Below, piece by piece: positions 3,306-25,742 of a stretch of 25,742 nucleotides of DNA. Position 1 is the stretch's first letter. Each line of letters begins with the position of its first letter. This DNA comes from Hormiphora californensis (Eukaryota > Animalia > Ctenophora). Made by a program: the position numbers and the translations under genes. The stretch is from assembly GCA_020137815.1 (NCBI GenBank), contig WFME01000023.1, positions 1 to 25,742 of the forward strand, written 5' to 3'. The notes under the pieces were generated by a model, which was not told the origin of the DNA, made no database searches, and saw only the letters and a list, made by a program, of their open reading frames with translations.

Positions 3306-3566
3306 GTAAAACAATTAAAAGTTACACCCAATACCATATCTCAGCTGTTTATCAAGAGACTTGTCTCATGAGGAGTTTGGAGAAACTAATTTGTGCGTAG
3401 TGGGCAGTGGCTTTATGAATAATAATAATAATAATAAAAATGACAGTTTATATCCCGCACTGACACAGTTTGTATACAGACAACTCGTTTTCCTTAATTT
3501 GAAAGGGACTGCAGTAGACTGCCTGCTCCTAGCACGGTTCTCTGATAACGGTGAGTTAGTGGGGAA

Positions 3567-4523
3567 CTATCCCACTTGGATAAGATTATTACGGATGAAG
3601 TAGCAGCCGTCAGGATCTTCTGATCGTATCCGCTTCAAAGTGGACCTTAGAGCTTTTTGCTCTTTCAGTTCAGAGGGCGTAAGATCCGGAGAGAGATAAA
3701 CAGCCGAAAACTGTTTGGAGTCTTTGAGGTTTCGTGCCTTTCTGAGGAGTGCGAGGAGAGTCGCTCTCTTCTCCAGGGATACTAAGAGCGGTCTAGGGCG
3801 CTTCTCATTTCTTTCGCCGATGCGTTTCATCGTAGTCACTTTCGGTTTCTCATTTAATTCCTCAAAAAGTTCGTCTAAAGTAGTTTTAGCTACTCTATCG
3901 GTTGTTTCTGGGAGACCAAACACAACCATGTTCTTCTCTCTTCCGGGCTGTTGGACGGGAGTAGGATGATTCACTGGTAGTGGTTTTCCCACTTTGGGGG
4001 AGGTTGCAGCACAATTCTGTGCTAGCACAGTAGAGTAGGCTTTCACCTTCTGCACCGATGCTGTCACTGTACTGAGTTGTTGCTTCTGGTGGTTGATAAC
4101 CGTTTGCTGAAGCTCGATTACGTTAACCCGATGGCGGTCAAGTTCTTCTTTACATTCACGCAGCTGTTTCTCGAGGTTTTCCACACTGATAACCGTTTCA
4201 AAATTGTTCATTGTTGCTCGGGCAAGTTTCATACTGGAGAGAAAAATACGCGAAGTAGCCTCGATTATTTCACTCGTAGTTCGGTCCTTGAGACAATGTC
4301 TAAAGTACGAACCCCAGTGCTTGCTAGGCGAAGCTAAGCTGTCGTTGGTTAACATTGAATCGGGTGCAGCTTGAATCGATCTATAACATTGAGTAAACTC
4401 ATCTGGTTTGATGCTCGTCGTGTTGTCCGAATTCAACAGGTAAACTTCAGAAACAAAGTCATCCACCGTCTCTTCTAATCGTTTTATCATAGGGTTATCG
4501 CCCTCGTACTTCGCTTCCGACAT
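3567..4523 (-). CDS. LINE ORF1-like protein (coiled coil + RRM + CTD; L1/Transposase_22-like), 318 aa from first ATG
   Basis: Coiled coil LEKQLRECKEEL...LQQTV. Motifs REKNMVVFGLPE, RIG...RPRPLLVSL and VYLSPDLT..E....KALR are typical of LINE ORF1. Confidence 0.85.
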   Translation of the reverse strand: MSEAKYEGDNPMIKRLEETVDDFVSEVYLLNSDNTTSIKPDEFTQCYRSIQAAPDSMLTNDSLASPSKHWGSYFRHCLKDRTTSEIIEATSRIFLSSMKLARATMNNFETVISVENLEKQLRECKEELDRHRVNVIELQQTVINHQKQQLSTVTASVQKVKAYSTVLAQNCAATSPKVGKPLPVNHPTPVQQPGREKNMVVFGLPETTDRVAKTTLDELFEELNEKPKVTTMKRIGERNEKRPRPLLVSLEKRATLLALLRKARNLKDSKQFSAVYLSPDLTPSELKEQKALRSTLKRIRSEDPDGCYFIRNNLIQVG

Positions 4524-4572
4524 TATCAACGTTTCGTTTTTCTGCCCTTCGGGGCTGTTACATCGGATTCAT

Positions 4573-4610
4573 CTCAATAAATAGTTTTACGTTGTAGTTG
4601 ATGAAAGTTT
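4573..4610 (-). other. Spliced-leader-like sequence at 5' end of left arm
   Basis: AAACTTTCATCAACTACAACGTAAAACTATTTATTGAG on the minus strand. It shares the CAAACTTT...CTAC...TTGAG layout of the SL at 12562. Confidence 0.7.
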
Positions 4611-4649
4611 CAAACTTTCATCAACTACAACGTAAAACTATTTATTGAG
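4607..4649 (+). other. Spliced-leader-like sequence at 5' end of right arm
   Basis: GTTTCAAACTTTCATCAACTACAACGTAAAACTATTTATTGAG. The arms are identical up to TTGAG and differ immediately after it. Confidence 0.7.
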
Positions 4650-5807
4650 CAGGAAGATGAATCCGATGTAACAGCCCCGAAGGGCAGAAAAACGAAACGT
4701 TGATAATGTCGGAAGCGAAGTACGAGGGCGATAACCCTATGATAAAACGATTAGAAGAGACGGTGGATGACTTTGTTTCTGAAGTTTACCTGTTGAATTC
4801 GGACAACACGACGAGCATCACACCAGATGAGTTTACTCAATGTTATAGATCGATTCAAGCTGCACCCGATTCAATGTTAACCAACGACAGCTTAGCTTCG
4901 CCTAGCAAGCACTGGGGTTCGTACTTTAGACATTGTCTCAAGGACCGAACTACGAGTGAAATAATCGAGGCTACCTCGCGTATTTTTCTCTCCAGTATGA
5001 AACTTGCCCGAGCAACAATGAACAATTTTGAAACGGTTATCAGTGTGGAAAACCTCGAGAAACAGCTGCGTGAATGTAAAGAAGAACTTGACCGCCATCG
5101 GGTTAACGTAATCGAGCTTCAGCAAACGGTTATCAACCACCAGAAGCAACAACTCAGTACAGTGACAGCATCGGTGCAGAAGGTGAAAGCCTACTCTACT
5201 GTGCTAGCACAGAATTGTGCTGCAACCTCCCCCAAAGTGGGAAAACCACTACCAGTGAATCATCCTACTCCCGTCCAACAGCCCGGAAGAGAGAAGAACA
5301 TGGTTGTGTTTGGTCTCCCAGAAACAACCGATAGAGTAGCTAAAACTACTTTAGACGAACTTTTTGAGGAATTAAATGAGAAACCGAAAGTGACTACGAT
5401 GAAACGCATCGGCGAAAGAAATGAGAAGCGCCCTAGACCGCTCTTAGTATCCCTGGAGAAGAGAGCGACTCTCCTCGCACTCCTCAGAAAGGCACGAAAC
5501 CTCAAAGACTCCAAACAGTTTTCGGCTGTTTATCTCTCTCCGGATCTTACGCCCACTGAACTGAAAGAGCAAAAAGCTCTAAGGTCCACTTTGAAGCGGA
5601 TACGATCAGAAGATCCTGACGGCTGCTACTTCATCCGTAATAATCTTATCCAAGTGGGATAGTTCCCCACTAACTCACCGTTATCAGAGAACCGTGCTAG
5701 GAGCAGGCAGTCTACTGCAGTCCCTTTCAAATTAAGGAAAACGAGTTGTCTGTATACAAACTGTGTCAGTGCGGGATATAAACTGTCATTTTTATTATTA
5801 TTATTAT
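4612..5807 (+). mobile_element. ORF1-only non-autonomous LINE-like retroelement, right arm of head-to-head pair
   Basis: Inverted near-identical copy of 3418-4610. It has 7 extra nt (CAGGAAG, 4650-4656), at least 3 substitutions and a (TTA)n tail. Confidence 0.8.
4706..5662 (+). CDS. LINE ORF1-like protein (coiled coil + RRM + CTD), 318 aa from first ATG
   Basis: Same protein as the minus-strand copy except K/T and S/T changes. An in-frame TGA at 4658 and the ATG at 4706 define the start. Confidence 0.85.
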   Translation: MSEAKYEGDNPMIKRLEETVDDFVSEVYLLNSDNTTSITPDEFTQCYRSIQAAPDSMLTNDSLASPSKHWGSYFRHCLKDRTTSEIIEATSRIFLSSMKLARATMNNFETVISVENLEKQLRECKEELDRHRVNVIELQQTVINHQKQQLSTVTASVQKVKAYSTVLAQNCAATSPKVGKPLPVNHPTPVQQPGREKNMVVFGLPETTDRVAKTTLDELFEELNEKPKVTTMKRIGERNEKRPRPLLVSLEKRATLLALLRKARNLKDSKQFSAVYLSPDLTPTELKEQKALRSTLKRIRSEDPDGCYFIRNNLIQVG

Positions 5808-6568: not shown

Positions 6569-7912
6569 GAACCGGGTTTTTTTCCACCGAACCGAACCGA
6601 ATCGAATTTGAAAAACTTTTTTACCGAACCGAACCGAACCGAACCGAACCGAATTTCGGTAATCGAACCGAACCGAACCATACAAAACTTTTTCTGTATA
6701 AATGTTTCTCTAAAAAGTCATGGAGAGCACCAATCAAGGTATTGAGAATCATTCTCTGAAATTTTGTTAAAAAATGTTTGAAAAAATTTCAAAGTCAATT
6801 TTGTGAAAAAATTTTCAAAGTCAATTTTATCGTAAATTTTCTATGTCAATTTATGCGTACGAATCGTGTTTCGAATCGGCAATGCTATACGGGAATGGTA
6901 TTGCTAATTAGCAGGATTAAACGAACCATGACTCGTGTCTCTCTAAATTTCCTAATTAGATTTGATGGGGAATCACGTATCAGCACAATCCATCTCGGAC
7001 CCACTAATTACCAACATCACTCCCGTTTAGCATTGTCGATTAGAAACACGATTCGTATACCATAATTTACTTAAAATATTTTTCACAAAAAAAATTTCAC
7101 AAAATTTCAGGTAATGATTCTCAATACCTTGATCGATGCTCTCCATGATTTTTTAGAGAAACATTTAATTTTGTGAAAAAAACTTTGTAAAATATTTCAA
7201 AGTCAATTTCGGAAAAAAAATTCTATGTCAATTTTGCCGTACGAATCGTGTTGCGAATTGGTGATGCTATGCGGCAGTGCTCTCGCTAATTAGCAGGATT
7301 TATTGAAACATGAATCGTTTCCCCTAAACTTCCTAATTAGATTTGATGGGGGATCACGTATCAGCATAATCCATCTCGGACCCACTAATTAAGCAACATC
7401 ACTCCCGCTTAGCAATACCGATTCGAAACACGATTCGTACGCAAAAATTGACATAGAAAATTTTCCATAAAATTGACTTTGAAATATTTTCCAAACTTTT
7501 TTACAAAATTTCAGAGAATGATTCTTAACACCTTGATCGGTGCTCTCCATGAATTTTTTGAAAAAAAAAGTAATTTCTGAATTTGTTGACCCTCTCATGA
7601 GGACACGATTCGACGGGAAGTCAGGTATCAAATCAATCCATATCGAACCCGCTAACTAGCGAAATCATTTCCACATAGCACCACCGATTCGAAATAGGGT
7701 TAATACGGCGAAATTGACATTGAAATCCATACAATTTTCGTGAAATAATTGGAAAATTTTGCATGAAAAAGCCCGATTTCTGGGCATTTTTTGACCAAAA
7801 AATTCGGTGGTTCGGCCAAAATTTCCTACCGAACCGAACCGAACCGAACCGCCCAAAAAACACCGAATTTCCGAACCGAACCGAACCGAACCGAATATTC
7901 GGTCGCTTCCTG
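6566..7912. mobile_element. Non-autonomous hAT-like element with (CCGAA)n subterminal repeats; left tip missing
   Basis: Right end ...TTCGGTCGCTTCCTG is followed by the 8-bp target GGCCAAAC (7913-7920), 7 nt of which recur at 6487-6493. CCGAA arrays lie at both ends. The interior has inverted (6700-6775 vs 7095-7166 and 7500-7560) and direct (6850-7060 vs 7230-7440) blocks. Confidence 0.85.
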
Positions 7913-12088: not shown

Positions 12089-12530
12089 ATTTCGAAGTTA
12101 GGAAGGCCAAGGCTTGGGGTACCCTAAATAAGATGAACAGAGTCTGGAATAGAAAAAAAAAATAGATGTCTAGAAAGATGAAAGTGAGGTTGTTCAGATC
12201 CACTGTTGAGACCATCTTACATCTTTCTCTACGGTCTACGGATCTGAAACGTGGACAATAACCAAGAGCCTAGGCAAGAAGATTGATGGGTATTACTCGA
12301 GGATGTTGAGGGCAGCACTGAACATCAGGTGTGCGGACAGGGTGTCAAATGCCGTGGTTTTCCAAGATATCCCTCGTGTAACTGAGAAGATAAGAAGCCA
12401 GAGACTGAGAATGGCGGGGCACCTTGCAAGACACGATGGCCTAGTGGGACATGACTGATGAACTACTTATGTGGATTGTGGAAACCAGCTCATGGCCAGG
12501 CGCGGCGTAGCAGCCCGTTACTAACATTCA
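12089..12530 (+). mobile_element. Degenerate RTE-clade LINE, C-terminal fragment, left part
   Basis: With frameshifts it translates to RKAKAWGTLNKMNRVW..KVRLFRSTVETIL..YGSETWT..RMLRAALNI..RLRMAGHLARH..PAHGQARRSSPLLTF. Confidence 0.8.
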
Positions 12531-12561
12531 AACTTTTCAACACTACAGCCCGTTACTAACA

Positions 12562-12601
12562 TTCAAACTTTTCAACACTACTTTAAACAAATTAATTTGA
12601 G
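12562..12601 (+). other. Ctenophore spliced-leader sequence forming the 5' end of the full-length LINE
   Basis: TTCAAACTTTTCAACACTACTTTAAACAAATTAATTTGAG matches, from memory, the major Pleurobrachia/Hormiphora SL. It lies exactly at the insertion junction and is followed by GC rather than a GT donor, so it is not an SL RNA gene. Confidence 0.85.
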
Positions 12602-12630
12602 GCTTGGCCTCTAGGTCCCGATGAAATAGA

Positions 12631-14430
12631 ATGGGCTCGAGGATGACTGGGGAGATAACGATAAGGCACGACAACCTTGAGAGGACGCTCCTCGAGATAT
12701 CTACTACAGACTCTGTGGTCGTGAGTAGGGACGACCTTGAACTCTTAGTTACCAGGGCATTAAATAAAACCCCTCCCCCAATCCCCACCCGGACAATTAA
12801 AAACGGCCTTGCAGTGCTTTATTCCAGTTTTATAGACTCTTTCTCAGCTGAGTCATTATTGGGTGAGCTGAACCTTCCTCCCCGGGTATCTAGAGGCAAT
12901 AGGTTCGCCTGGTATTCTGAGACTGGGGTTACATACGGCTGGGGCAACATCTCTCTTAGGCCGTCCCCCCTTCCCGTCCCCCTGTCAGCCCTCCTACAGC
13001 GAGTAAACAGGACCTTTAAAACAAAGTTTAATGGGTGCCTTATGATACGCTACATGAACGGTGATGAGAATCTACCCCTCCACCAGGATAGAGAGGATAT
13101 GAATGACCCGTCTTCCCCCATCTTTACAATATCTCTTGGGGCAACACGTTTCCTTGACTTTCTAGATGGCAGATACAGATCAGAGAGCAGTTTTGAGGGT
13201 AGTCTCACCCTGCACAATGGTGACGGAGTCATGTTTATGCCAGAGTGTCAAGACCAACTCTGGCATGGGTGTCCAAAGTACCCAGGTCAGTCAGGTGAGA
13301 GGGTGGCTCTGTCCTTCCGAAGAGTCAAGGTACCGGATAATCACTCACCCCTCAACTCCACGCCCGACCGATCGCACCAATCCCCGGCTCCGACTCCGCC
13401 GACTCTACCCGAAACTCCTGTACATACTTTACAGTCTGTTTCCTCAAACCAGCCTGAAATGTCCTCCCCGCCTCGCTACCTCCCAGACACAACTATTGTC
13501 TCCCACACTTCACCACTGACTGACCCACCGGTCTCTGAGGCACTACAATCCTCACCTCCATTCCCAGTACCAGTCTCTGAAATCGTACCAGTCTCTGAAA
13601 TCGCCCCGGTGGTCTCTGAAACCCCATCACCACCTCTCAACTCCAACACTCCACCGGTCTCAGGCATCGCCCCAGTGGGCTCTGGTCCCCCACCAGTGGG
13701 CTCTGGTCCACCACCTCTCAACTCCAACACTCCACCGGTCTCAGGCATCGCCCCAGTGGGCTCTGGTCCCCCACCTAACTCCTCCACCACCCCACCATCC
13801 TCTGCGACCCCACCGGCCGTCTCTTCCGGGCTTCCTGTCTTGCACCCTTCTCGAACTCCGGCTGAGCCACGCCACCCCACACGCCACCTCATCATCGGCG
13901 ACTCCATGGTCAGGGGTCTCAAGCTGAACTTCAACCAACACCAAGCTCAAGTTCATGCAATGGGGGGTGCCACTATCCCTGACTTGATTAGAGTGTGCAG
14001 TTCTTGGACTCGAGATTTGGACATTGATTCCATCAGTATACTAGTGGGCACCAATGACATATCTTCTCCTCATGGCATCTTAGATATATGTCATATGTAT
14101 TTGGGTCTCATTGATTTACTTAGTTACCGTTTTCCGCGTGCATCAATAAACTGTCTAAGCGTTCTACCGAGACTGGACCGTCCTGAGTTAGCCCCCCGTA
14201 TTATCAGATTTAACCAAACAATGAGGGGTGTCATTGATGACTATTTCGGGAGTAATGGTGAAATGTGTGTTGGCTGGCTTGACTGCTTTGATGATTTCTT
14301 GGAGCACTGTGGGTGCTGTGTTAATCGCTCATTGTTTGGACGAGGTATGCTCCACCCCAGTGCTCTTGGTAAGAGGCATTTAGTCAATATTTTTAAGTAT
14401 CTCTTGAGTCCGTATAATAGAGCCAGCTAG
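12631..14430 (+). CDS. LINE ORF1: AlkB-family 2OG-Fe(II) dioxygenase + Pro/Ser/Thr-rich linker + SGNH/GDSL esterase (599 aa)
   Basis: AlkB motifs: FNGCLMIRY, HQD (13081), ISLGATR, LHNGD, WHG (13264), RVALSFR. SGNH blocks: IIGDS (13897), GGAT, VGTND, LHP. Confidence 0.88.
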   Translation: MGSRMTGEITIRHDNLERTLLEISTTDSVVVSRDDLELLVTRALNKTPPPIPTRTIKNGLAVLYSSFIDSFSAESLLGELNLPPRVSRGNRFAWYSETGVTYGWGNISLRPSPLPVPLSALLQRVNRTFKTKFNGCLMIRYMNGDENLPLHQDREDMNDPSSPIFTISLGATRFLDFLDGRYRSESSFEGSLTLHNGDGVMFMPECQDQLWHGCPKYPGQSGERVALSFRRVKVPDNHSPLNSTPDRSHQSPAPTPPTLPETPVHTLQSVSSNQPEMSSPPRYLPDTTIVSHTSPLTDPPVSEALQSSPPFPVPVSEIVPVSEIAPVVSETPSPPLNSNTPPVSGIAPVGSGPPPVGSGPPPLNSNTPPVSGIAPVGSGPPPNSSTTPPSSATPPAVSSGLPVLHPSRTPAEPRHPTRHLIIGDSMVRGLKLNFNQHQAQVHAMGGATIPDLIRVCSSWTRDLDIDSISILVGTNDISSPHGILDICHMYLGLIDLLSYRFPRASINCLSVLPRLDRPELAPRIIRFNQTMRGVIDDYFGSNGEMCVGWLDCFDDFLEHCGCCVNRSLFGRGMLHPSALGKRHLVNIFKYLLSPYNRAS

Positions 14431-14521
14431 TTCTTAATCCTCATATATAGTTCAATAGGGAGTCTAGTGAAATCTCCCCAGTCATACCAACAAATTTAGT
14501 TAAGCTTACTTAAAATCGACA

Positions 14522-17500
14522 ATGATCGATTTACAACTCTATAGATTCAGAGTCGGATGCTTCCAATCTATCAAAGTACACTCTCTCTCGAAGAAGCACC
14601 GATCTCAACCATTTCCTCACTCTATTGAGGAAACGAGCAGCCGCACAGATGATCCACAACCACAACCCCCACAAAACACTCGTTCATGTCTAAAAACTAT
14701 AATCTTTCTAACAGCACTGTCTCTCTGTATCCTATTAAACTCTCTGGTTGTTTACCACCTACAGTCGCATTCAATCTCTGCTTCATCCTCCCCGTCATTA
14801 AATCTGTCCTCCCAAATACCAAGTACGCTCTTCCCTAAATACCTATTAATTACATACATTGCCTCTATCTATCCTAAAAATACATTAGTCAACAACCGTG
14901 GTCTCTATTTTATTGCTGGTCTGGCTCTCCTTCTCCTCGTTCAATGTAACCCAGGTATTAAAAACCCTGGCCCCGATAGAATTAAAATAGTATATTGTAA
15001 TGCACAGGGCCTCATACATATGAATAGCATTGGTGGCGACTGCCCTATTTTCCAAACTAAAAAACTCCTTGATCTCCAGGCATACTTGTACACACATGAA
15101 CCTGACATAGTTATAGTTAATGAAACCTGGCTCAACTCCTATGTAGGCAATAATGAAATTGTATCTGACTCTCTCTACACCATATTTAGAAAAGATAGAA
15201 GTGATATCGACAAAAACAAGTATGGTAAAAAAGGGGGCGGTGGAGTAATGATATTATGTAAAAACCATAGTGATATACAGTACTCTGCTATTATGGAGCA
15301 AACTGACCTACCAATAGTTAGTATTCTAGTTAAGCCTAAGAAAGGACCTAAGTTATGCATCTCGACCTATTACAGATACGACTACTCCGACTGTGAATCC
15401 AACAGTCAAGCTGAAAAGTATTATAAAGTTCTCTCGAAGCGATATAATTCCCTTACAATAATAGGCGACCTCAATCTTAGCTCTATAAAAAACTGGGATT
15501 TGCCTTCATCCAATGTTGGGAGACACTCTAGTTTCCTTGAAATCGTAAGTAACCTTGGTATGGTATCCCTGATAAACTCTCCTACGCATCGTTCAGGAAA
15601 TATCCTAGACCTCATTCTAACAAATAGACCTAGCATATATAATCAAGTTAAAGTTGAACAGGATCTATTAGTTAAATCTGATCATAGCACAATTAAATGT
15701 ACCATCAATTTAGGAGTCTCCATGAAAAATACTGCCAAGTTTAGAAAATTTGCATATAAGAAAGCAAACTGGGATCGGATTAACCAAGATCTGAACTCAT
15801 GTAATTGGAATGCTCTTTTTGTAGGCCTTAATGCTCGAGAATGTGTATCCTGTCTCAAATCAAAACTAGACATTATCCTAAAAAGGTACGTTCCTATGGT
15901 CACTGTTAAACCCTCCTCTCGTCCACCCTGGTTCGATGATGACCTAAAAGCTCTCCGAAAATCTGTAGAAAGAGCCCGCAAGCTTCATCTTAAGCACCCT
16001 GACGATATCACCTTAAACGACGAATACGTATCCCTGGCTGACAATTACAAACTCTCTGTAGAAGACAAAAGAGCTAGTTACTATACAGACGAGGAAATGA
16101 ACGACAATAATACTATAACTAAAAAGTTCTACAAGTATCTTAAATCTTTAGTAGGGAGCACTAGAATTCCCGATTCTGTTAGTGACAATAACAACTCTTC
16201 CTGTAGAACTTCTGAAAAATGTAACATGTTCAACAACTTCTTCTGTGCTCAATTTTCTGATATTAGTAGTTACAATACAGTAATCGATCCTAACAGGAAC
16301 CACGTAAATGACTGTAATAATCTTCTATTTAGAGAGGAGGATGTTCAAAAAATCCTCAAGGACATAAACCCCTCCAAAGCAACTGGTCCTGACAATATAG
16401 ACGGTATTGTTCTTAAAAAATGTTCTTCAGTCCTAGCTCGCCCTCTTGCATACATCTATAATCTCTCATACCATTCCAGTTATTTGCCATCAGAATGGAA
16501 AGAGGCAAATGTAGTGCCAGTCCACAAGAAAGGGGACAAGTCTCTAGTTAAAAATTATCGGCCTATATCTCTAACCTGCCTAGTAATGAAGGTATTTGAA
16601 AGACTCATTAGGGACAAGCTCTTCCTTATTTGCCAAGATAAAATTTCTCCTCATCAACATGGCTTCGTACCTAATAAATCATGCTGTACCCAGATGATTG
16701 AATTCACTGACAGCCTCGCCTACAATATAAATAACCATCTTCAGACTGATATCGTATATTTTGATTTTGCTAAGGCCTTTGATAGTGTTAATCATGATGT
16801 AATTATAGATAAGCTCCGAGATCATTACAATATTAATGGGAAAATGTTAAGTTTCATTATAGAATATCTTAGGGATAGAAAACAGCGGGTAGTTATAGAT
16901 AGTATATCCTCTGAATGGGCACCAGTACATTCTGGGGTGCCTCAAGGATCCATTTTAGGACCACTTCTTTTTGTCTTATTTATTAATGATATCACTAGTG
17001 TAATCAATCAGGGTACCAATAGTAGGCTATATGCTGATGATCTCAAAATATGGAAAAGTGTACACTCTCCCTCAGATAGCCTACAACCTGATATCGACAA
17101 CCTTCACAAATGGTCTATAGAAAACCGCATCTCCTTCCACCCAGCTAAATGTAAATTAATAAGGCTTAATCTAAATAGACGTGAAATAGCTCATTCTTAC
17201 ACTCTTGCAGGGGAATTAATTGTTTCAGTTTCCTCTGAGAAAGACCTCGGCGTTCTTATTAGTAACCGTTTGAGTTATGAGGAGCACAGGAATTCTATTC
17301 TTGCTTCCCAGAGGCAAAAGTTAGGGCTATTAAAGAGGCACAGTAAATTAGCTAGGACACCACCTGAACGGAAGACCCTATACTTGTCTCTTGTGCGGTC
17401 CTTACTAGAACATTGCTCACAAATCTGGAGACCAACTAGTACAGCTGGGATTGAAAAGTTAGAAAAACTCCAGAAGCGAGCGATAAAATGGATACTAGAT

Positions 17501-17899
17501 GAAGAAAATTCTAGCTACTCTGAGGTAGAATATTTTTCCAAGCTTGCCAACCTCAACATACCTCCTATTCGTAATAAATTCGAGCTTAATGATTTAATGT
17601 TTCTGCACAAAATAATATATGGTACCTCCCCAATCGATCTCCCTCCTTATCTCTCGTTCTTTACCCCGTCTCAGATAGTAATAAACACTAGGGCCCAATC
17701 CAATATGGATTCACTCCACCTGATGACGTCCGAGGTTCCTAGAGTTAACATATTTGAAAATTCCTTCTTCTACCGTGCCCACAAGCTCTGGAACCTTCTT
17801 CCGCTTTCCCTGAGAGCTACTTCTGATCCCATAATTTTCTCTTCTCAATTAAAAAGACATCTTTGGGATAGTTCTGGGACTGATCAGGGTGTCACTTAG
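14522..17899 (+). CDS. LINE ORF2: hydrophobic leader + APE endonuclease + reverse transcriptase (1125 aa)
   Basis: APE: NETWL, GDLN, LDL, SDH. RT: YRPISL, QHGF, DFAKAFDSV, GVPQGSILGPLLF, YADD, KDLGV. Confidence 0.96.
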   Translation: MIDLQLYRFRVGCFQSIKVHSLSKKHRSQPFPHSIEETSSRTDDPQPQPPQNTRSCLKTIIFLTALSLCILLNSLVVYHLQSHSISASSSPSLNLSSQIPSTLFPKYLLITYIASIYPKNTLVNNRGLYFIAGLALLLLVQCNPGIKNPGPDRIKIVYCNAQGLIHMNSIGGDCPIFQTKKLLDLQAYLYTHEPDIVIVNETWLNSYVGNNEIVSDSLYTIFRKDRSDIDKNKYGKKGGGGVMILCKNHSDIQYSAIMEQTDLPIVSILVKPKKGPKLCISTYYRYDYSDCESNSQAEKYYKVLSKRYNSLTIIGDLNLSSIKNWDLPSSNVGRHSSFLEIVSNLGMVSLINSPTHRSGNILDLILTNRPSIYNQVKVEQDLLVKSDHSTIKCTINLGVSMKNTAKFRKFAYKKANWDRINQDLNSCNWNALFVGLNARECVSCLKSKLDIILKRYVPMVTVKPSSRPPWFDDDLKALRKSVERARKLHLKHPDDITLNDEYVSLADNYKLSVEDKRASYYTDEEMNDNNTITKKFYKYLKSLVGSTRIPDSVSDNNNSSCRTSEKCNMFNNFFCAQFSDISSYNTVIDPNRNHVNDCNNLLFREEDVQKILKDINPSKATGPDNIDGIVLKKCSSVLARPLAYIYNLSYHSSYLPSEWKEANVVPVHKKGDKSLVKNYRPISLTCLVMKVFERLIRDKLFLICQDKISPHQHGFVPNKSCCTQMIEFTDSLAYNINNHLQTDIVYFDFAKAFDSVNHDVIIDKLRDHYNINGKMLSFIIEYLRDRKQRVVIDSISSEWAPVHSGVPQGSILGPLLFVLFINDITSVINQGTNSRLYADDLKIWKSVHSPSDSLQPDIDNLHKWSIENRISFHPAKCKLIRLNLNRREIAHSYTLAGELIVSVSSEKDLGVLISNRLSYEEHRNSILASQRQKLGLLKRHSKLARTPPERKTLYLSLVRSLLEHCSQIWRPTSTAGIEKLEKLQKRAIKWILDEENSSYSEVEYFSKLANLNIPPIRNKFELNDLMFLHKIIYGTSPIDLPPYLSFFTPSQIVINTRAQSNMDSLHLMTSEVPRVNIFENSFFYRAHKLWNLLPLSLRATSDPIIFSSQLKRHLWDSSGTDQGVT

Positions 17900-18082
17900 G
17901 TAGTCACCAAATGGGTCTTCTTTTATAGTTCTCATAATATCGAAAGTGTTTCACTTCAGCATTTAACTCGTGCTCTCTACTCCATTTTGGCGCGGTTTAA
18001 CCGTTTTTATGTATCCTGTCAAGTATCTCTCCTATTGTTCCCATGTGTATCTCTCAGTCAGTTCATTTCTCTCTTTCTCTTT

Positions 18083-18183
<101 letters not shown>

Positions 18184-18628
18184 ATTGTCTAACTACTCTT
18201 TCAGTTCCTAACTGCTCTCTAATTATTGGCTTGTGTTGAACATGTGATCTCTCCACCATTAGCCAATAGCGCTCTCGTGTCATTTACTCTCTCTTGGTCT
18301 TGGAAATATTCCAATCATAGCAGAAGCACCATCATAACATTATTACTCATGTTGATCATTATCATCAGTCGGCTGCTCATGCTCAAATCTAAATAAAATT
18401 AATATCTATTTAATAACTATGATAATACTATAAATATCATATTCTCATATATTCTATAAATTGATTTAATATCTCTCTTGATAGGTGTAAGCGCTGTCTA
18501 CAGCCCTCCGCTATCTGGCTCTATTGTACAGGGAAATTTATCTTTATATCTATATTATGTGTGTCTATATCTACGCGTGTTTGTGTCCCTGTATTGTAGA
18601 CCTTTTAGTTTGAAAATCAAATCAAAAT

Positions 18629-18766
18629 CAGATGTCCTATTACAAGACCTGGACGATGTGTGTGATAATAGTAACGAAATGCTTGAACTTATGTGCAACC
18701 GGGATAACTGGAAATCGTTCATTACTACTCGTCCTCTCCGGTCGCCATAAGTCAAGTAAGTCAGTC
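18629..18766 (+). mobile_element. RTE-clade LINE fragment, right part with 3' tail
   Basis: DVLLQDLDDVCDNSNEMLELMCNRDNWKSFI..* continues the 12089-12530 fragment. The tail is AAGTCAAGTAAGTCAGTC. Confidence 0.78.
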
Positions 18767-20159: not shown

Positions 20160-20695
20160 AGGTTTGGCATGGTTGGGACTTTGGTTCGGTTTGAAGGTTG
20201 GTTTGGAGGTTGATTTGGAGGTTGGTTTGGTTTGGTTTGGTTTGGTTTGGTTTGGTTTGGTTTGGTTTGGTTTGGTTTGGTTTGGTTTGGTTTGGTTTGG
20301 TTTGGTTTGGTTTGGTTTGGTTTGGTTTGGTTAGTTTTGGACTTTGGTTTGGTTTGGTTTGGTTTGGTTTGGTTTGGTTAGTTTTGGACTTTGGTTTGGT
20401 TTGGTTTGGTTTGGTTTGGTTTGGTTTGGTTTGGTTTGGTTTGGTTTGGTTTGGTTTGGTTTGGTTTGGTTTGGTTAGTTTTGGACTTTGGTTTGGTTTG
20501 GTTTGGTTTGGTTTGGTTTGGTTAGTTTTGGACTTTGGTTTGGTTTGGTTTGGTTTGGTTTGGTTTGGTTTGGTTTGGTTTGGTTTGGTTTGGTTTGGTT
20601 TGGTTTGGTTTGGTTAGTTTTGGACTTTGGTTTGGTTTGGTTAGTTTTGGACTTTGGTTTGGTTTGGTTTGGTTAGTTTTGGACTTTGGTTTGGA
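20160..20695. repeat. (TTTGG)n pentamer satellite filling intron 1
   Basis: Long TTTGG runs punctuated by a recurring TTAGTTTTGGAC variant. Confidence 0.97.
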
Positions 20696-20736
20696 GTTTT
20701 GAGTTTGATATTTCCTTATCCCTTCTCTCTTTCCAG

Positions 20737-24874: not shown

Positions 24875-25021
24875 TTTGATGAGCTAGAGACACAGAGACT
24901 TAACAGAAGGTGGAGTTGGGAGACCGTGTGTTCATCCCAAATGTTACCATTGATAGCGGCTGTCTCCCAGATTGAAAACACAACACTTTCGCTGAGACAG
25001 TGAAAGAAAGAATAATAATCG
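24875..25021 (+). CDS. CD36: CD36/SCARB family gene, probable coding exon 4 with apparent single-base indels
   Basis: TTTCAG| acceptor, phase 0. The segments FDELETQRL / KVELGDRVFIPNV / PLIAAVSQIENTTLS / ETVKERIII need three frame changes. G|GTGAGC donor. Confidence 0.55.
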
Positions 25022-25742
25022 GTGAGCAGACTTGACAGACATATAATAATCGGTGAGCAGACTTGACAGACATATAATAATCGGTGAGCAGACTTGACAG
25101 AAAAATAATAATCGGTGAGCAGACTTGACAGACATATAATAATCGGTGAGCAACGCATTGACAGCAACATAAAAATCGGTGAGCAGACTTGACAGACATA
25201 TAATATCGGTGAGCAGACTTGACAGACATAAAATCGCGTGAGCAGACTTGACAGACATATAATAATCGGTGAGCAGACTTGACAGACATATAATAATCGG
25301 TGAGCAGACTTGACAGACAATAATAATCGGTGAGCAGACTTGACAGACATATAATAACGGTGAGCAGACATTGACAGACATATAATAATCGGTGAGCAGA
25401 CTTGATAGAATAGAATAATCGGTGAGCAGACTTGACAGACATATATAATCGGCGAGCAGACTTGACAGACACTAATAATCGGTGAGCAGAATGCAGACAT
25501 ATAATAATCGGTGAGCAGACTCTGACAGACACATAATAATCGGTGAGCAGACTTGACAGACACATAATAATCGGATGAGCAGACTTGACAGACATATAAT
25601 AATTGTGAGCAGACTTGACAGACATATAATAATCGGTGAGCAGACTGCAGACATATAATAATCGCGGAGCAGACTTGACAGACATATAATAATCGGTGAG
25701 GCAGACTTGACAGACATATAATAATCGGTGAGCAGAATGGAC
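25012..25742. repeat. 31-bp minisatellite, ~23 copies, running off the window
   Basis: Unit ATAATAATCGGTGAGCAGACTTGACAGACAT with scattered indels. Confidence 0.97.

Follow-up and report, generated by a model that had tools for sequence, protein, structure and literature searches.

The stretch analysed here, called the window throughout, comprises 25,742 nt of the genome of the ctenophore Hormiphora californensis (assembly GCA_020137815.1, contig WFME01000023.1, positions 1 to 25,742 of the forward strand). It contains an intact 6.07-kb long interspersed nuclear element (LINE) at 12562-18627, inserted in a copy of an RTE element, and the first 40 nt of this LINE are a DNA copy of the host's spliced leader (SL). 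Genome searches were made on the 45-contig, 110.7-Mb assembly, which represents one individual's haplotype; C1, C3 and so on denote its contigs, and the window lies on C15. A total of 86 genome loci (L001-L086) were retrieved as sequence, and a wider census of junctions was taken with short patterns that print 18 upstream bases. The LINE and its borders are laid out as follows.

12512-12546, plus strand: first unit of a 35-bp tandem duplication, composed of 15 nt of RTE target (AGCCCGTTACTAACA) and SL-A nt 4-23 (read directly)
12547-12561, plus strand: RTE flank, the last RTE bases before the insertion, in the second duplication unit (RTE consensus ...CGCCCGTTACTAAC-CTTCC-CAGATG)
12562-12601, plus strand: DNA copy of the leader SL-A, nt 4-43 of the 43-nt exon (exact unique match; published leader, true SL RNA genes, many RNAs)
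12602-12630, plus strand: 5′ untranslated region (UTR) of 29 nt, with a start, GCTTGGCCTCTAGGT, common to other SL-headed groups
12631-14430, plus strand: open reading frame 1 (ORF1), 599 amino acids, intact; 2-oxoglutarate/Fe(II) (2OG-Fe(II)) oxygenase domain (AlkB-like) and a weak GDSL/SGNH esterase match
14522-17899, plus strand: ORF2, 1125 amino acids, intact; APE-type endonuclease and reverse transcriptase (Pfam)
17900-18627, plus strand: 3′ UTR with an internal (CT)n at ~18090-18180 and a short tail ...GAAAATCAAATCAAAA(T) (from the C3 and C5 alignments)
18628-18750, plus strand: RTE resumes (CAGATGTCCTATTACAAGACCTGGAC...), C-terminal part of the interrupted frame

The window element is an APE-type LINE, i.e. 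a retrotransposon without long terminal repeats (non-LTR), its ORF2 matching endonuclease (PF03372, 1.5e-6) and reverse transcriptase (PF00078, 4.2e-27) families. ORF1 matches PF13532 at 7.6e-15 and PF13472 at 1.5e-4, the latter below Pfam's cut-off; LINEs of the CR1/L2-type clade have an esterase in ORF1, and of this trait the window ORF1 has only the weak GDSL/SGNH match. The pairing of an AlkB-like 2OG-Fe(II) oxygenase with a GDSL/SGNH esterase-like domain recurs in a second, unrelated SL-headed family (L061/L073; L061:1583-3025). Both ORFs are open in the window and C3 copies, and ORF2 is shortened in the C5 copy. The long copies on C3 and C5, 94-99% identical by segment, align with the window from the leader to 18624-18625 and then run into their own flanks, which fixes the 3′ end of the LINE; its tail is short (...AATCAAATCAAAA). 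No ribozyme family reached the Rfam gathering score in the window.

The insertion is delimited by intact RTE copies, which read ACTAAC-CTTCC-CAGATG without interruption (CGTTACTAAC-CTTCC-CAGATGTCC across the site). The left junction in the window is ...ACTAACA|TTCAAAC, i.e. CGTTACTAAC-A-TTCAAAC..., and the right junction is ...ATCAAAA-T-CAGATGTCC, with RTE continuing from 18628. The LINE fits the RTE gap exactly, and the target is duplicated little if at all. The original prediction, made from the letters of the window, held that the interrupted RTE frame pins the 5′ junction; the interruption is real when set against the intact copies, but the exact start is blurred, because the RTE target (CTTCC) and the leader (TTTCAAAC) share TTC, which leaves nt 4 to nt 7 as possible first bases of the inserted leader. 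The 35-bp tandem duplication (12512-12546/12547-12581) spans the RTE/SL junction and so arose at or after integration. Slippage in replication, a side effect of integration or a mistake in the assembly could account for this duplication (12512-12581), which leaves the SL-headed reading unchanged. Between the leader and the ORF1 start codon at 12631 lie the predicted 29 nt (12602-12630).

The 40-mer at 12562-12601 matches the leader with 0 mismatches, occurs once in the window, and has 0 occurrences expected by chance. In the H. californensis leader as published, which has 44 nt (GAGTTTCAAACTTTTCAACACTACTTTAAACAAATTAATTTGAG; PMC8527503), it is nt 5-44. True SL-A RNA genes in the assembly read ...cagc|AGTTTCAAAC...TTTGAG|GTAAGCTGAG, in the layout ...CTCCATCAGC|AGTTTCAAAC...AATTTGAG|GTAAGCTGAG followed by an intron; these boundaries define an exon of 43 nt, of which the window carries nt 4-43. 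Upstream of nt 1, the genes share a conserved block (...GGGAGG..GTCC..CTCCATCAGC), and their intron holds a putative Sm-like site, CCUUUUGG, partly paired in the predicted fold. Folding of the 129-nt SL-A RNA predicts three stem-loops (z = -4.6). The genes form head-to-head pairs on C5, C9 and C11 (L083, L084 and L085, ~600 bp between members) and a tandem array on C13 (L086, C13:3189000-3196500, period ~750 bp), in which several members bear small indels.

Presence of the leader on RNA was assessed in contigs of three marine metatranscriptomic runs and one small run under the same species label. In the latter, contigs over 12562-12601 number in the hundreds and part ways right after 12601-12611, and the marine metatranscriptomes gave the same pattern of contigs that share the leader and diverge behind it. 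Contigs that part right behind the leader place the 40-mer on many different RNAs. The window 40-mer is a genuine host leader, as the original prediction had proposed; the published report gives the leader on 56% of H. californensis Iso-Seq reads and counts 718 leader sequences in the genome (PMC8527503). The window copy was rejected as an SL RNA gene, since it lacks donor, intron and promoter block: it continues with GCTTGG and ORF1, with no GT donor and no stem-loop intron, and what lies upstream is RTE coding sequence, not the SL-gene promoter block.

Allowing up to 2 mismatches, the SL-A 40-mer has 484 matches in the genome. Exact copies followed by GT number 84, and the genes are only those that continue with GTAAGCTGAG, namely ~12 exact ones and a few indel-bearing members of the C13 array; ~12-16 true SL-A RNA genes thus stand against ~484 SL-A copies. 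A second leader, SL-B (AGTTTCAAACTTTCATCAACTACAACGTAAAACTATTTATTGAG), is distinct from the SL-A 40-mer; its 35-mer has 165 genome matches, and one SL-B copy followed by GTAAGCTGA is a candidate SL-B gene. On contig 1, the first 30 exact copies of SL-A include 0 SL RNA genes and fall into 21 sequence groups, and most have a long ORF beginning 10-70 nt behind the leader. Pfam searches of leader loci returned a reverse transcriptase in one, an AlkB plus GDSL ORF1 in one, a PHD finger in one and nothing in most; LINE ORF1s commonly have no Pfam match. Most leader copies in the genome are repeat heads, not SL RNA genes. A hammerhead ribozyme was considered for CUGAUGA...GAAAC-like strings found directly behind the leader in L002, L003, L009 and L012, and dropped after Rfam searches gave no gathering-score match in the window and five loci, and none at E values up to 1 on L003; these strings may be chance or a split motif.

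The LINE family is small (~8 copies, ~4% divergence). It comprises three full-length copies, a 5′ fragment on C12, four 5′-truncated copies with the 3′ part only, and an SL-headed head on C7; 5′ truncation is usual for LINEs. The UTR start GCTTGGCCTCTAGGT occurs at nine places in the genome, all nine SL-headed at the same junction (five SL-A, three SL-B and one decayed, SL-B-like head). The form SL-A|GCTTGGCCTCTAGGTC is shared by the copies on C15, C3, C5, C12 and C7. Four copies retrieved with their flanks begin at leader nt 4, ~nt 10 (preceded by 9 odd bases), nt 4 and nt 5, and these flanks are unrelated to one another; the target-site duplications (TSDs) are GAGAGAGGCTATG (13 bp) on C3, ACACCC (6 bp) on C5 and ~0 bp in the window. 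Differing flanks, TSDs and leader starts indicate that target-primed insertion took place independently at each site, from an RNA already headed by the leader. A longer 5′ UTR or outron upstream of GCTTGGCC, the arrangement that would have spoken for a promoter-bearing family, was not found in any family copy in the assembly. The same architecture is seen in the GCGTGAGCCTCTAGGT group, in which 11 of 11 places are SL-headed (nine SL-A, two SL-B). Three otherwise non-alignable groups carry GC(T/G)TG(A)GCCTCTAGGT right after the leader (window 12602-12616), which may be a conserved signal beside the trans-splice site.

A second, unrelated repeat family in the window is also SL-headed, at the following positions.

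3422-5807, strand not assigned: head-to-head pair of the second SL-headed element (arms 3422-4574 and 4655-5807, 100% complementary)
4607-4649, plus strand: SL-B, heading the right arm of this palindrome

That a second element of the window shares the feature was part of the original prediction; it is indeed SL-headed, but by SL-B and not by the same 40-mer. SL-B at 4607-4649 runs into CAGGAAGATGAATCC..., and the leader is joined to CAGGAAGATG in the right arm and to ATGAATCC in the left. All 38 5′-complete copies of this family are leader-headed, 27 by SL-A (24 SL-A|CAGGAAG, 3 SL-A|GAAG) and 11 by SL-B (9 SL-B|CAGGAAG, 1 SL-B|AGGAAG, and 1 SL-B|ATGAATCC, the left arm of the palindrome), giving four alternative AG junctions (SL|CAGGAAG, SL|GAAG, SL|ATG and SL|AGGAAG). 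For this genome, the suggestion that SL-heading is general is borne out. Sorted by identity to the window copy, the heads are distributed as follows.

~100% identity: 8 SL-A heads, 4 SL-B heads
99% identity: 3 SL-A heads, 3 SL-B heads
88-90% identity: 7 SL-A heads, 3 SL-B heads

The two leaders alternate among copies at least 99.5% identical. In a five-copy alignment, the window SL-B copy and one SL-A copy disagree at 4 of ~1140 sites (99.65% identical), and the SL-A copies are 5-11% apart from each other. SL-B also heads at least five further families at the same junctions as SL-A. Leader type thus changes often and recently in the second family, with an occasional shift of the junction to the next AG.

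Head-to-head dimers of SL-headed elements are joined inside the leader's near-palindromic 5′ end (AGTTTCAAACT), as at window 4575-4650, and inverted leader pairs 42-56 nt apart are many genome-wide (e.g. C2:8210001/8210057, C3:400014/400064, C1:3717109/3717151 and C8:5352568/5352610). This geometry suggests hairpin or microhomology priming in second-strand synthesis. A hairpin-like motif, GCCC-N4-GGGCAG, lies 20-45 nt behind the leader in L001, L007, L015, L017, L019, L023, L025 and L026 and at window 4664-4690, and is common to many otherwise dissimilar SL-headed families.

The exon-only content of the heads, their exact boundary, the missing SL intron and gene promoter, and the differing flanks and TSDs support the original proposal that the retrotransposed LINE RNA was trans-spliced. 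Trans-splicing recurs in co-resident families, as seen in leader swapping and AG shifting. In the explanation we favour, host SL trans-splicing would make the 5′ end of the LINE RNA by joining the SL exon 29 nt before ORF1, and target-primed reverse transcription would copy the capped, SL-bearing RNA almost to its 5′ end, so that each insertion would start with the leader. The integrated leader, AT-rich, ending in AG and with no 5′ splice site upstream, probably serves as acceptor; transcription running in from upstream would give RNA that is re-spliced at this boundary and regains the same 5′ end, with either SL-A or SL-B as leader. No copy has an acceptor context other than the integrated leader, which makes the leader's terminal AG the most economical and, judged from sequence, the likeliest acceptor. 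This role, too, had been predicted; elimination, leader swaps and AG shifts support it indirectly. By analogy with the co-resident families, we infer that the LINE's own family is probably re-spliced in each cycle; its transcription would come from outside the element. We assign a probability of about 0.65 to a LINE that was copied from trans-spliced RNA and has its 5′ end rebuilt via the integrated leader. The broader proposal, in which dozens of retroelement families use the SL as a portable 5′ module supplied by the host and the integrated leader, serving as acceptor, makes them promoter-independent, is advanced tentatively, at slightly less than even odds.

Several observations weigh against rebuilding of the LINE's 5′ end. 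The five close LINE heads are all SL-A at one junction, with no re-splicing seen within the close family, although five of five would be expected about 1 time in 4 from a pool of ~3:1 A:B. The three SL-B places with the 15-nt UTR start differ at the next base and were missed by a DNA search with 12602-13300, which marks them as a diverged group outside the LINE's close family. Among the RNA contigs of the four runs (three marine, one under the species label), none bridges SL and LINE; contigs on the LINE body are few and of low depth and may be DNA; they include a perfect match of 171 nt from an oligo-dT metatranscriptome. Tandem SL-SL relics were absent genome-wide at up to 2 mismatches; reuse of the terminal AG alone would leave none, but a signature that could have spoken for re-splicing is thereby lost. 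The leader or ORF1 may hold an internal promoter, and an outron-bearing master could be missing, given that one individual's haplotype was assembled.

The alternative with the most in its favour, though we consider it unlikely, is a one-off capture: an ancestor was trans-spliced once, the leader was inherited as part of the 5′ UTR, and an internal promoter starts transcription at the first bases of the leader. Internal promoters are common in LINEs, a precise one would also give the observed clustering of 5′ ends at SL nt 4-10, and the shared leader and junction of the five close copies fit simple descent. The leader itself might even be the intragenic promoter element, a function it reportedly has in a nematode SL RNA gene. 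Against one-off capture, the transposable element (TE) copies lack the upstream block conserved in true SL genes. Inheritance also cannot produce what is seen around the LINE: groups with the same UTR start carry SL-A or SL-B at an identical boundary, leaders alternate among copies at least 99.5% identical in a co-resident family, and junctions shift to downstream AGs. Moreover, the leader is letter-perfect in copies with bodies 5-11% apart. Somewhat less probable again is that the SL-headed copies are sterile by-products of promoter- or outron-bearing masters missing from the assembly, whether on the other haplotype, unassembled or lost. The search of a single haplotype, the small size and ~4% divergence of the family, and the lack of an SL-to-LINE bridge in the four runs are all compatible with such dead ends. 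Against them, both ORFs are open in the window and C3 copies, a non-SL upstream context occurs in 0 of 9, 11 and 38 5′-complete copies of the three groups, and hidden masters would be needed for dozens of unrelated families.

Two further explanations were rejected on junction anatomy. LINE enzymes make template-switch chimeras such as U6/L1, so the LINE reverse transcriptase might have jumped to SL RNA or an SL-bearing mRNA, with no trans-splicing of the element's RNA. We regard this as very improbable, given that the junction always joins the exact 3′ end of the SL exon to a fixed position after the element's AG and that SL intron sequence is never present. Least probable of all is site-specific insertion into SL RNA genes, with the leader as target DNA. 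It is the classic link between non-LTR retrotransposons and leaders: SLACS, CZAR and CRE of trypanosomatids and NeSL-1 of C. elegans insert site-specifically in SL RNA genes, use a restriction-like endonuclease and borrow the gene's promoter. Like them, the window LINE is a non-LTR retrotransposon physically linked to SL sequence; unlike them, it is APE-type, dispersed with TSDs, joined to the exon only and far from SL genes. The flanks of its family are RTE and unrelated sequences with their own TSDs, and neither an SL-gene promoter block upstream nor a GTAAG intron downstream is present.

The leader-headed LINE is a variant on two known themes, SL-tagged retrocopies and co-transcript-processed LINEs. 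In dinoflagellates, SL-tagged retrogenes arise as trans-spliced cDNAs are recycled through repeated splicing and retroposition, leaving relic leaders that are truncated and stacked in tandem, with an AG inside or upstream reused (PMC12014239). In both systems, a DNA-encoded 5′ leader marks retroposition of a trans-spliced RNA. The dinoflagellate carriers are host genes, whereas those of Hormiphora are autonomous and non-autonomous retroelement families, and the stacked truncated relics of the former contrast with exact replacement at the leader's terminal AG, free of tandem relics, in the latter. About 30% of TE Iso-Seq reads in Hydra carry the host SL, so TE RNAs there likewise use the host trans-splicing machinery; in its accessible part, that report is a transcript-level observation and makes no claim on leader-headed genomic copies or leader renewal (PMC12220107). 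In R2, RTE and L1Tc, a hepatitis delta virus (HDV)-like ribozyme frees the 5′ end from a co-transcript (PMC4035085, PMC3383444). There, as proposed here, the 5′ end is cut from a longer co-transcript and no precise start site of the element's own is needed; their processing is self-encoded and leaves an uncapped end, whereas here the host spliceosome would donate a capped leader. The published H. californensis 'leader loci' are the same sequences as those described here, counted, in the accessible part of the report, without separating SL RNA genes from other copies (PMC8527503). No report of leader-headed LINE families was found in the literature searched, whose coverage mostly excludes subscription journals.

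A LINE that has to stay alive faces the loss of its 5′ end in copying, and needs an internal promoter or a self-cleaving ribozyme. If the 5′ end is rebuilt via the integrated leader, there would be a third solution, in which host trans-splicing cuts the element from any transcript and caps it with the leader, joining co-transcript processing to a host-made capped end in autonomous LINEs. This would be a distinct host-parasite relationship, linking the spread of retroelements with how SL trans-splicing evolved in an animal lineage that branched early. The broader, promoter-independent proposal would amount to a LINE life cycle not described so far, and would account for most ctenophore 'leader loci' not being leader genes. 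With most of the ~500-700 such loci in this genome being retroelement heads, gene models are misled, because Iso-Seq leaders map to the nearest retroelement-head copy, and SL gene counts come out too high. The two leaders provide a built-in marker for tracing individual retrotransposition cycles.

The window contains further repeats. Runs of (CCGAA)n at 6574-6682 and 7816-7895 flank direct repeats of 380 bp (region 6769-7725), and two satellite-like arrays occupy 20200-20700 and 24970-25740, one of them strongly GC-skewed with a period of 10 bp, the other with a 31-bp period (GTGAGCAGACTTGACAGACATATAATAATCG).

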